From positions 23,622,001 to 23,686,000 of the forward strand of contig JAQFVV010000001.1 of assembly GCA_028023455.1 (NCBI GenBank): a stretch of DNA of 64,000 nucleotides, written 5' to 3'. Every line of letters begins with the position of its first letter. Positions within the stretch are counted from its first letter, which is position 1. Below are positions 16,835 to 24,861 of the stretch, piece after piece. Source of the DNA: Epiperipatus broadwayi. Taxonomy: Eukaryota; Animalia; Onychophora. The notes below the pieces were generated by a model, which was given only the letters and a program-made list of their open reading frames with translations, searched no databases and was not told the DNA's origin. Both the position numbers and the translations under genes were made by a program.

Positions 16835-16940
16835 AATAATAATAATAATAATAATAATAATAATAATAATAATATTATTATTATTATTATTATTATTATT
16901 ATTATTATTATTATTATTATTATTATTATTATTATTATTA
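16835..16940. repeat. Mirror microsatellite (AAT)13 followed directly by (ATT)22
   Basis: Read directly; the centre is aatatt at 16871-16876. It abuts LINE copy 1. Confidence 0.95.
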
Positions 16941-19722
16941 ATTGTAGAATTAATAATAGGTCAGGTGGAGTTTTAGTTTATTATAAATCAGTGCTTTGTG
17001 TGACTTCTATTGATGCAGTGTTTGATTCTTCTGAATGTCTTGTTTTAAATTTCATTTTAGGTTCAGACAAATTAACACTTATTGCTCTGTATAGGTCTTG
17101 CAGTCATACAGTTGAAAGCTTTAGTGACGAACTTGGTGATTTGCTTACTAAATTAAATGATAAATTCATTATTCTTGTTGGTGACTTGAACATTGATATT
17201 TCTGGTGAAATTTCTGTTGCTGCTCAACATTATTTAAATATGCTGTCACTTTTTGGATTTATTCAATGTTTATTTCATCCTACACGTGTTACATCTTCAT
17301 CATCTTCACTTATTGATCACGTCTTTGCTAGATGTCCTGAAAATATTCTTTTGAAAACATCTTTTTTGGATTGGTGTCTTACAGATCACAGAGGAATTGT
17401 TGTTACTTTTAAAAAGAATTTTTCTCATAGTAAAAAGTGTTTTAAACTTTTATCTCATGATCGTTTGAAATCCTTAATTACTAAATATGATTGGAATTTA
17501 ATCTTTGAGTTGAATGATGTAAATTGTGCATTTTCATTCTTTGTTGACAAGATGAAGGAGTTTATAGATTATTGTTCTTTTATAAAATATATAAAGAAGA
17601 AAGATCTGAAGAGACATGATTGGATTACAAATGAGTTAATATCAAAAGTTAACAGTAAGAATAAATTGTACAAGCTTTTCAAAAGGTTTCCTGCTAATGA
17701 AGATTTAAAAATTCAGCTAAAGGTTCTTGATAAAGAAATAAAGAAAGATATAGTCAAAGCTAAATTGATTTTCTATTCTACTCAAATTGATTCTTTAAAA
17801 TCAACTAAATTAAGCAACTTTTGGACTGTTGTTAAAAAATTTATTTTTAAAGAAGGATTTTCACAAATTTCTAGACTAAAGATTAATGAAATATCTATTG
17901 ATGTTTTAAATAATTCAAAACTAATAGCTGATCATTTCAATCAATATTTTATACACAGTGTGGAATTGTTAATGAATAGTTTTGACAATAATTGCAGTTC
18001 TCATGTTTTTCAATATAAGAAATCTATTCTGAATTCTTTTGTTTTTAAAGAGATTGAAGATTGTGAAATTTTAGATTCTCTTTATAAAATGAGACATAAA
18101 AAATGTATTGGTTTGGATTGTATTTCTGTAAAAATATTAATTGAAAATGTTTCCATTCTTTTACCAATTTTATCTTTTTTATTTAATTCTTCTATTGATT
18201 CAGGTATATTTCCAGATTGTTTAAAATCTGCTGTTGTTACACCTATTTTTAAGAGTGGAGATAGGGAATGTTTGGAAAACTACAGGCCAATTTCTATTTT
18301 ATCAACATTGTCTCAAATTTTGGAAATGTGTGTAAAAAACAGAATTGTTTTGTTTTTTCAAAAATATAATTTATTTTCAAACAATCAATTTGGGTTTTTG
18401 CCAGGAAGATCTACAGAACTGGCTTTATCTGAACATGTTTCAGTCATCACTGAATCTTTAGAAAAAGGTTACAAAACTATAGGCATTTATTTAGATTTGC
18501 GGAAAGCATTTGACTGTGTTCCACATGATATATTAATAATTAAGTTACACCATTGTGGCATAAGGAGTGCTATGCTGGAATGGTTTAAATCTTATTTAAG
18601 TAATAGAAGCCAATTTGTAAAAATTAATAATTTTTTGAGTGATTCTGAAATAATTAGATATGGAGTTCCTCAAGGTTCAGTCCTGGGTCCATTGTTATTC
18701 ACTGTTTATATTAATGATCTGCTTGATCTTTCTCTTCATTCTAACATTTTTTGTTTTGCAGATGATACTGCTTTGGTTACTTCAGCAGTTTCATATAGTT
18801 TACTTGAGAAACTTGTGAATGAAGATTTATTTAAAATTACACAATGGATGAACAGTAATAGATTACTGCTAAATATTAATAAATGTAATTACATAATGTA
18901 TTCTCTTAAAAATATTCCAGCAAAAGACTTGTTAATTCAATTGCCTTATGTTAATAAAACGTCTTGTCAGAAAATTACCAGGACTTCAACAATTTCTTAC
19001 CTTGGCTTGGTTTTGGATGAGTATTTACATTGGGATAAACATATTCTTTGGCTTCAAGTAAAATTAAGAAAACTTAATTTTCTTTTTTATAGATTAAGAG
19101 ATTGTTTGAATAAATCTGTCCTATTAAGTATATATAAACAAATTTTCTTAAGCAGACTTTCTTATGGTATAACATTATGGGGTGGCACTGCAGCATATTT
19201 TTTGAAGTCATTGCAAACACTACAAAATTTTACGTTAAGAATTATTTTGTTTAAATCTTTGGATTTGCCAAGACTTGAATTATTTAAGTGTGCTGGAGTT
19301 TTAACTATTCATCAATTATTTTTAGTGAATATTTTGTGTTATTATATTAAATACAAAAAAATGAATAAATATAATTCTTCAGCAATAATGGTGACTAGAT
19401 CAAGTGATTTTGATTTATTATTTGAACCAGTGTACTTTAAAACTCATTGCAGATATCAGAAATGTTATCTTGGTCCAAGATTTTATAATATTTTTATAAG
19501 AAACATTGGATTTAATGTTAATGACTTATCAAGGAAAACTTTGAGAAAATTAATTATGAACTGGATTGTAATTGATGATAATCAAAAACTTTTTATTTCT
19601 ATTTAATTATTTTGTTGTATATTAATGTTTTTTATTTTATTGCACATGTATTTTTGTTAAGCTCCATGCATGATTTATTTATCACAAGGAGATTATATGT
19701 TTAATAAATTAAATTAAATTAA
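16934..19722 (+). mobile_element. LINE copy 1 (CR1/L2 group), 5'-truncated inside the APE domain
   Basis: About 99% identical to 21071-23868 (offset 4137-4140). It starts at attattaattgtaga and ends in a 3'UTR followed by (TAAAT)n and (TTA)n. Confidence 0.92.
16941..19606 (+). CDS. LINE ORF2 (partial APE endonuclease + reverse transcriptase), N-truncated
   Basis: APE motifs ALYRS, VGDLNID, LIDHVF and TDH. RT motifs NYRPISIL, NQFGF, DLRKAFD, YGVPQGSVLGPLLF, FADDT and YLG. The frame is open back to the junction (NCRINNRSGGVLVYY). Confidence 0.92.
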
Positions 19723-20080
19723 ATTATTATTATTATTATTATTATTATTATTATTATTATTATTATTATTATTATTATTATTTATTATTATTATTATTAT
19801 TATTATTATTATTATTATTATTATTATTATTATTATTATTATTATTATTATTATTATTATTATTATTATTATTATTATTATTATTATTATTATTATTATT
19901 ATTATTATTATTATTATTATTATTATTATTATTATTATTATTATTATTATTATTATTATTATTATTATTATTATTATTATTATTATTATTATTATTATTA
20001 TTATTATTATTATTATTATTATTATTATTATTATTATTATTATTATTATTATTATTATTATTATTATTATTATTATTATT
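19723..20080 (+). repeat. (TTA)n tract of about 355 bp; tail of copy 1 and spacer before copy 2
   Basis: Nearly pure trinucleotide repeat with one irregularity near 19781. Confidence 0.95.
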
Positions 20081-23746: not shown

Positions 23747-23868
23747 TTATTTTATTGTATATTAATGTTTTTTGTTTTATTGCACATGTATTTTTGTTAA
23801 GCTCCATGCGTGAGTTATTTATCACAAGGAGATTATATGTTTAATAAATTAAATAAATTAAAATTAAA

Positions 23869-24861
23869 ATTATTATTATTATTATTATTATTATTATTAT
23901 TATTATTACTACTACTACTACTACTACTACTACTACTACTCCTACTACTACTACTACTACTACTACTACTACTACTACTACTACTACTACTACTACTACT
24001 ACTACTACTACTACTACTACTACTACTCTCTCTACTCTCTCTCTCTCTCTCTCTACTCTTCCTCTCTCTCTCTCTCTCTCTCTCTTCTCTCTCTCTCTCT
24101 TCTCTGCTCTCTCTCTCTCTCTACTCTCTCTCTCTACTACCCTCCCTCCACTCCCCCCCCCCCCCCCCCCCCCCCCCCCCCCCCCTCCCCCCCCCCCTCC
24201 CCCCCCCCCACCACCACCCCACCCCCCCCCCCCCCCCCCCCCCCCCCCCTCCCCCCCCCCCCCCACCCCCCCTCCCCTCTCCTCCTCCCCCCCCACCACT
24301 CCACTCCCCCCCCTCCCCTCCACCACCCCACCACCACCACACTCCCCCCCCCCTCTCTCTCTCCCCCACTACTACTACTACTACTATTATTACTACTACT
24401 ATTACTATTATTATTATTACTATTATTATTATTATTATTATTACTATTATTATTATTATTACTATTACTACTACTACTATTATTATTACTACTATTACTA
24501 CTACTATTACTATTATTATTATTATTATTATTATTATTATTATTATTATTATTATTATTATTATTATTATTATTATTATTATTATTATTATTATTATTAT
24601 TATTATTATTATTATTATTATTATTATTATTATTATTATTATTATTATTATTATTATTATTATTATTATTATTATTATTATTATTATTATTATCTATTAT
24701 TATTATTATTATTATTATTATTATTATTATTATTATTATTATTATTATTATTATTATTATTATTATTATTATTATTATTATTATTATTATTATTATTATT
24801 ATTATTATTATTATTATTATTATTATTACTATTACTATTATTACTATTATTACTATTACTA
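23869..24861 (+). repeat. Low-complexity tail: (TTA)n, (CTA)n, (CT)n, poly-C, (CTA)n, (TTA)n
   Basis: Read directly. The symmetric drift away from and back to (TTA)n suggests a mis-called long (TTA)n tract. Confidence 0.8.

Follow-up and report, generated by a model that had tools for sequence, protein, structure and literature searches.

Two truncated LINE copies lie head to tail in (ATT)n arrays

The window analysed here is a stretch of 64,000 nucleotides from the onychophoran Epiperipatus broadwayi, positions 23,622,001 to 23,686,000 of contig JAQFVV010000001.1 (C1). The assembly (GCA_028023455.1) comprises 5.6 Gb in 18,588 contigs with about 25% G+C, and the contig, at least 35 Mb long, carries the window at 23.62-23.69 Mb. 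Between positions 16835 and 24861 of the window, with non-array DNA on both sides, we found two 5'-truncated copies of one long interspersed nuclear element (LINE), both on the same strand and both embedded in arrays of the trinucleotide repeat (ATT)n, that is, (TTA)n in another phase and (TAA)n on the opposite strand. The layout was mapped with Tandem Repeats Finder (TRF) and by a self-BLAST of the window. Element positions refer to the full-length element, which is 4397 nt long.

16835-16874, no strand assigned: (AAT)13, the left edge, an array in the opposite sense (TRF and sequence)
16873-16940, plus strand: (ATT)22, array abutting the 5' end of copy 1 (TRF and sequence)
16941-19722, plus strand: copy 1, a 5'-truncated LINE, truncation at element position ~1607
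19723-20080, plus strand: (ATT)119 separating copy 1 from copy 2; copy 1's tail, what remains of the host array, or both
20081-23868, plus strand: copy 2, a 5'-truncated LINE, truncation at element position 614
23869-24861, plus strand: compound 3' array of (ATT)13, (ACT)40, a CT-rich part, a C-rich part of ~200 nt and ~158 mixed ACT/ATT units (TRF and sequence)

The 220 bases to the left of (AAT)13 at 16835 were single-copy in the assembly. At the 5' junction of copy 1, array and element share 7 nt of ATTATT microhomology, and the homologous stretch begins at 16934. Copy 1 retains codons 74-963 of the second open reading frame (ORF2) in an open frame at 16943-19606, whose sole in-frame stop is the terminal one, and its 3' untranslated region (UTR) ends in AATAAATTAAATTAAATTA. 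Copy 2 retains codons 55-310 of ORF1 at 20083-20847, followed by TGA, and then ORF2 at 20851-23746, which is open except that one extra G in the run at 21056-21059 shifts the frame. The first 990 bases of copy 2 (20081-21070) have no partner in copy 1 and code for the last 256 residues of ORF1 and for ORF2 codons 1-70, the start of the apurinic/apyrimidinic endonuclease (APE) domain. Since copy 2 is less truncated than copy 1, this segment is its extra 5' part and not foreign or unique DNA.

A first-pass annotation, made from the sequence, had described a head-to-tail layout (TTA)n-LINE-(TTA)n-LINE-(TTA)n on one strand with no unique DNA between the copies, and both points were borne out by TRF and self-BLAST, the 990 bases just mentioned belonging to copy 2. 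The near-identity that it noted also stood, the shared 2.8 kb being 98.9% identical; its count of about 20 substitutions over 2.7 kb did not, as we counted 25-27 mismatches and 3 gaps. The spacing from the start of copy 1 to the start of copy 2 was 4137-4140. A repeat was indeed present upstream of copy 1, not in the form of the plain (TTA)n that had been described, but as the inverted junction (AAT)13(ATT)22. No (ATT)n of at least five units occurred in the window outside 16.8-24.9 kb, which places the association between arrays and LINEs beyond chance. At 24026-24360 the downstream array passes from (ATT)n into (ACT)40, CT-rich sequence and, at 24153-24353, about 200 nt of about 90% C, before it returns through ACT to ATT. 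This compound C-rich tract could be genuine, as a compound microsatellite, or an artefact of long reads or of the assembly.

The two copies are independent insertions of one young family

Copies 1 and 2 are independent insertions of one family. They differ by 0.91% and have no common variant that is missing from the other 29 copies examined, and their nearest relatives are other genomic copies, 0.36% and 0.51% apart. Taken together with the different truncation points (~1607 and 614), these observations identify the pair as neither an assembly duplication nor a local tandem duplication. Private substitutions numbered 5 in copy 1 and 12 in copy 2. If this difference is real, it would make the upstream copy 1 the younger one, which landed in the array 5' of copy 2; we take this as suggestive only.

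The family was surveyed by a genome search with copy 2, in which 40 of 1450 candidates were scored and 30 loci were fetched with 1.5-kb flanks (these loci are referred to by L numbers, and contigs by C numbers). Copies 98-99% identical to copy 2 were found on many contigs. Exact-pattern counts over the whole genome gave at least 529 3' ends (with at most 1 mismatch) and 121 full-length 5' ends, 98-99.9% alike, and the copies were spread over hundreds of contigs. Ages were assessed from pairwise distances and private substitutions. The copies differ from one another by 0.04-1%, in a star-like pattern with L002 and L003 at its centre. The family is a very recent burst, and both reading frames are kept in 11 of 21 full-length copies; judged from sequence, it may still be active.

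Most copies reside in (ATT)n arrays, almost always in one orientation

The flank survey covered the 30 fetched loci and copy 1, among which 29 copies were evaluable. An (ATT)n array of 4-211 units (median 43) abutted the 5' end of the element in 25 of these 29 copies, and a 3' array was present in 27 of the 29. The 5' arrays adjoined the full-length start and nine truncation points (element positions 216, 231, 390, 614, 630, 930, 1017, 1113 and 1607), and the (ATT)n/element junction was base-precise at these ten start points. The same association was found genome-wide: of the first 52 full-length ends that matched the exact 5' pattern and were evaluable, 40 had (ATT)4 or more within 9 nt, and on the reverse strand, with each site reported once, the counts were 46 versus 55. 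At many full-length junctions a G, GG or TG stands between (ATT)n and ATTATTGCTGCTG. Such an extra G would be left by copying of an RNA cap and marks the end of the RNA, which argues that the upstream array was not part of the transcript.

Every fetched copy with an array is oriented in the (ATT)n sense except L019, which lacks an ATT tail and sits the wrong way round, in the (AAT)n sense of its array. The 3' arrays were longer than the 5' arrays (median 83 versus 43 units, paired Wilcoxon p = 0.02). The first-pass annotation had proposed a LINE with APE and reverse transcriptase (RT) and a (TTA)n tail that resides in (TTA)n arrays, and had named (TTA)n at most 5' flanks as support for targeting; both were found in the fetched copies and at the full-length ends, far above chance, with the orientation fixed and the truncation point irrelevant. 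Preferential targeting of (TTA)n/(TAA)n arrays by the family is well supported by these junction sequences.

Head-to-tail pairs of the same family, like the one in which the annotation had seen a candidate self-propagating array, do recur. Among the ends listed, they were found at C21:11666378/11670812, C89:3954986/3960965, C6231:5657449/5661957 and C6231:1657007/1659824, at an expected number by chance of about 0.03 among 100 listed ends (529 copies, 5.6 Gb).

Inverted microsatellite junctions like that at the left edge of the window were also seen elsewhere. L021 has (ATT)51(AAT)10, and L009 (oriented 1-1112) has two inverted copies, both cut at element position 216, around (AAT)41 ... (ATT)42. 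It is possible that the junctions in L009, L021 and the window are products of fold-back or of opposite-sense insertion. The arrays also contain variant blocks of ACT, GTT, AGT and ATG units. RNA editing was considered as their source and rejected, as every single-base variant type is present and not only A-to-G.

Coding capacity and placement of the family

The full-length element starts with a 5' UTR of about 450 nt that begins (ATT)1-2 GCTGCTGACTTTG, and the putative start of its RNA, read from the sequence, is ATTATTGCUGCUG. The 3' UTR ends GTTTAATAAATTAAATTAAATTA, followed by (TTA)n, with AATAAA just ahead of the tail. ORF1 encodes 310 amino acids. An N-terminal C4HC3 pattern at residues 4-55 corresponds to a PHD finger (Pfam E 7e-4), and Pfam further reported two Baculo_FP domains, domain 1 at E 0.002, which is under its cut-off, and Baculo_FP_2nd at E 2e-16. 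The predicted model has a long helix at residues 82-163, then a beta-alpha-beta-beta-alpha-beta unit as well as a domain at the C terminus (CTD), at low confidence; it is a single-sequence AlphaFold model with a mean pLDDT (predicted local distance difference test) score of 53, too poor for a fold search. ORF1 had no sequence matches in the PDB. ORF1 and ORF2 are in the same frame with one in-frame TGA between them (e.g. L005:2265-2273), and ORF2 has no in-frame ATG for 175 codons. ORF2 would thus probably be made by stop-codon readthrough or by reinitiation. It is a 963-codon open frame with an N-terminal APE (PF03372, PF14529) and an RT (PF00078 RVT_1, E 2e-33); Pfam found only these three domains and no RNase H, zf-RVT or CCHC domain.

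This architecture, with an N-terminal APE and an RT in a short ORF2 that has neither RNase H nor a C-terminal CCHC or zf-RVT, fits the CR1/L2 group. ORF1 agrees with it: the order of PHD finger, coiled coil and an FP domain resembling an RNA recognition motif (RRM) and CTD is that of type IIC (PMC4120745), and type IIC, with a PHD finger and a transposase-22-like part, is reported for L2 subgroup 6 and CR1 subgroup 5 (PMC4120745). The assignment to the CR1/L2 group made at first pass is therefore reasonable but unproven, as the fit is one of domain architecture only. A protein word-index search returned 98 matches, the best 34% identical and none with a name that tells the clade, and a protein atlas returned only generic endonuclease/RT clusters. 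The match to L1 ORF2p (8c8j, E 9e-15) covered the RT region only, and this weak match together with the missing zf-RVT argues against L1/Tx1. The Dong/R4 clade was ruled out by the APE upstream of the RT and by the presence of two ORFs.

The arrays are shared with other LINE families

The presence of (ATT)n on the 5' side of the copies raises the matter of whose arrays these are. The window was the only one of the 30 fetched loci with a same-family copy in tandem upstream, and at most host arrays the boundary was single-copy DNA or another LINE family's tail. The claim that the family inserts into its own tails was not supported by these loci in the form in which it had been made.

At 12 of the 30 loci the 3' array runs into GTTTCAAAG..., the reverse complement of the 3' end of another element (...AATAAAGTTTTGCTTTGAAAC). 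The ORF upstream of AATAAAGTTTTGCTTTGAAAC ends in a zf-RVT domain (28 bits), which identifies this reverse-oriented neighbour as an L1/Tx1-like LINE. The subfamily has 1459 exact 3' ends genome-wide, of which 990 are followed by (AAT)n in the element's own sense and in fixed phase, and the family forms head-to-tail arrays of its own at a spacing of 5.5-5.7 kb, for example at C8:1401997/1407701/1413423. Two further groups of LINEs occupy the arrays on the same strand as the 4.4-kb family. The neighbours are as follows.

L015:1-1498, plus strand: 3' end of the L1/Tx1-like LINE with zf-RVT, ending AATAAAGTTTTGCTTTGAAAC(AAT)n; also found past the tail in L005, L008, L012 and L030
L025:5263-6763, and the same place in L026, element's strand: a 47%-identical relative of the family, 5'-truncated at about ORF2 codon 573
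L004:5578-6776, L029 (oriented 4980-5742), L021:5939-6766, L024:5503-6033 and L030:535-1002, element's strand: a LINE group with a YADD-type RT

The 47%-identical relative sits head to tail behind the element's tail of 16-21 TTA units and has (ATT)26 or more after it; both flanks are about 98% alike between L025 and L026, which are haplotigs or a segmental duplicate. Members of the YADD-type group are 22-32% identical to the 4.4-kb family and end ...GTAAATAAATTGAATTGAATTGA(ATT)n. Their 5'-truncated ends abut (ATT)n at several different points, which is the same array behaviour in another family, and at L030 the group lies upstream of the element. The (ATT)n arrays are thus a shared niche, occupied by CR1/L2-like families in the (ATT)n sense and by L1/Tx1-like elements in the (AAT)n sense.

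Further ORF2 C-terminal fragments of L1/Tx1-like type were observed in the window at 4737-5915 (plus strand), 11088-11366 (minus), 13229-13714 (plus) and 27046-28120 (minus). They are 31-45% identical to the (AAT)n-tailed family and are not adjacent to the array.

Mechanism and alternative explanations

We consider it probable that the locus holds two independent insertions of one very young 4397-nt LINE family that prefers (TTA)n/(TAA)n, with its sense strand on (ATT)n. The copies would arise by target-primed reverse transcription, started at a nick in the (TAA)n strand, and such a start would account for the fixed orientation. The first-pass annotation had suggested that priming depends on pairing between the RNA tail and the target. 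A (UUA)n tail would be able to pair with the primer and might act as a helper; a role in choosing the site was not supported by the loci. L015 has only an A9 tail and lies 2 nt from the body of the L1/Tx1-like element, whose tail is entirely 5' of the 4.4-kb element. In L002 the tail also ends in A9, and the whole 211-unit array is 5' of the element. These two copies and L019 entered their arrays with no pairing-competent tail, which argues that pairing would not be the site selector. We therefore favour, as an inference, a site chosen at the DNA level, by the endonuclease or by some other DNA-level recognition. Each insertion would add repeat units, with which the greater length of the 3' arrays is in agreement, and the arrays, often the tails of earlier LINEs of several families, would keep regenerating as landing sites.

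A wider reading, which we put forward tentatively, makes (TTA)n/(TAA)n a self-renewing niche for a guild of LINEs from two unrelated groups, in which every tail serves all members. The guild would include at least three CR1/L2-like families on the (ATT)n strand (the 4.4-kb family, its 47%-identical relative and the YADD-type group) and the L1/Tx1-like family on (AAT)n. The site would be chosen by the CR1/L2-like APE and not by tail pairing, and the 4.4-kb family would belong to the first microsatellite-specific lineage of the CR1 group.

Several observations weigh against targeting of pre-existing arrays as set out here. About 20% of the copies have no 5' (ATT)n (L018, L020 and L030; 12 of 52 genome-wide). 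In L018 (oriented 373-872) the end of another very young repeat lies 2 nt 5' of a full-length element. That repeat was 99-100% identical at all 40 scored places (830 candidates), and the downstream flank is another repeat. A genome-wide search for the upstream repeat ending in (ATT)n gave 0 matches, so that it normally has no such end and L018 is a true exception. Flank searches, which returned 409-2437 candidate matches, found no empty (pre-insertion) site; the flanks are repeats or, like the left flank of the window, have no second allele, which leaves the evidence that the arrays came first indirect; it consists of arrays made up of other LINEs' tails, at L015, L030 and the 12 L1/Tx1-like junctions, and of L019 with its opposite sense. 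The array lengths and the C-rich tract are those of the assembly, and the 30 fetched loci are biased to long, high-identity copies. Where the two elements lie tail to tail, the L1/Tx1-like one may have arrived second. Finally, the last 134 nt of the 3' UTR have no significant minimum-energy fold (z = -0.8), and the copies are too alike for an analysis of covariation.

An alternative source of the 5' tracts is template jumping, in which the RT, on reaching the 5' end of the RNA or a stall, switches to the (AUU)n tail of a second RNA and so makes both tracts and tandems with no pre-existing microsatellite. Jumping from the 5' end of one RNA to the 3' end of another is established for the R2 reverse transcriptase, and the extra G, GG or TG at many 5' junctions is compatible with it. 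We nevertheless regard this explanation as very unlikely. The downstream copy in the window is truncated at 614, so that a jump would not have begun at an RNA 5' end. The 5' tracts are up to 211 units long and contain variant blocks such as (AGT)34, (CTA)15 and (AAT)n that are missing from the copy's own 3' tail. Moreover, 12 of the 30 3' arrays end on the tail junction of another LINE, the arrays in L015 and L002 lie wholly 5' of a copy whose own tail ends in A9, and L019 is inserted in the wrong sense into an (AAT)n array.

It is also very unlikely, in our estimate, that the family targets its own tails specifically and that the arrays were built essentially by this one family. The pair in the window and those on C21, C89 and C6231 are far above chance expectation, as this explanation would have it. 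Against it stand the single fetched locus in 30 with a same-family copy upstream and the boundaries of the other arrays, which are formed by single-copy DNA, the YADD-type group, the 47%-identical relative or the L1/Tx1-like family. The smaller number of private substitutions in copy 1 (5 versus 12) points the same way, since, if real, it places the newer copy in the array 5' of the older one rather than in its tail.

An explanation with no targeting, by passive build-up in repeat-rich, low-recombination DNA or by local duplication or assembly artefact, draws on a genome so rich in repeats that the tested flanks had hundreds to thousands of candidate matches and on the difficulty of assembling long simple repeats, but it is most improbable given base-precise junctions at ten start points, the confinement of (ATT)n of at least five units in the window to the array, two copies that differ at 25-27 sites and in their ends and nearest relatives, and a family too young (at most 1% divergence) for its distribution to be the product of selective retention.

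Comparison with known target-specific LINEs

Target-specific LINEs illustrate how a retrotransposon can increase in number and yet spare genes, and they are an entry point to the way in which an APE reads sequence. The groups in which such elements are concentrated are the early-branching clades with a restriction-like endonuclease, R1 and Tx1. Most reported target-specific families belong to three non-LTR groups (PMC4640811). Microsatellite-specific LINEs include Dong on (TAA)n in the R4 clade, Waldo on (ACAY)n and Mino on (AC)n in R1, and Kibi on (TC)n and Koshi on (TTC)n in Tx1 (PMC3812793, PMC4640811), as well as Togen on (TG)n and some HERO families (PMC3812793, PMC4640811). To call the present family an undescribed system, as the first reading of the window tentatively did, is therefore an overstatement. 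The kind is known; the novelty would lie in the clade and in the two strands of the repeat being shared with an L1/Tx1-like family.

Waldo, Mino, Kibi and Koshi resemble the family in having an APE, in residing in one microsatellite and in ending in a tail of the target repeat (PMC3812793). They differ from it in the repeat unit, and the family has no zf-RVT and an ORF1 with a PHD finger. From its predicted proteins, the family probably belongs to neither R1 nor Tx1. Dong consists of one ORF in which a restriction-like endonuclease lies C-terminal to the RT. Its target is the same TAA/TTA repeat, which likewise flanks the element on both sides (PMC3812793), whereas the family has two ORFs and an N-terminal APE and is unrelated to Dong in clade.

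LINEs of the CR1/L2 group, such as UnaL2 with its (TGTAA)n tail, share with the family a short ORF2 with APE and RT and a repeat tail in place of poly(A). In this group, UnaL2 included, the tail units are thought to act in template slippage at initiation (PMC3747384). Unlike the family, these elements are regarded as dispersed and not as confined to a microsatellite, and in the literature searched, a partial coverage with Repbase Reports outside it, we found no report of a microsatellite-specific family of the CR1/L2 group. The tail of the Drosophila I factor is made by the reverse transcriptase at insertion, and this element, which is not known to be microsatellite-specific, carries both an RNase H domain and a CCHC motif. 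The I factor is like the family in its trinucleotide (TAA)n tail (PMC3747384) and differs from it in the RNase H and CCHC, which were not found in the family.

A telomeric array of the HeT-A/TART type was ruled out for the window, as the array is internal to contig C1 and copies occur over hundreds of contigs. As in HeT-A/TART/TAHRE, several LINE families are stacked head to tail in a shared niche, whereas the niche here is a dispersed microsatellite and not a chromosome end. With its hundreds of base-precise junctions in one trinucleotide repeat, a young and apparently active CR1/L2-like family would extend targeting to another major group of LINEs. With two unrelated LINEs on opposite strands of the same repeat, one genome would offer a testable pair, and it illustrates how LINE tails and microsatellites can sustain one another in a repeat-laden genome of 5.6 Gb.

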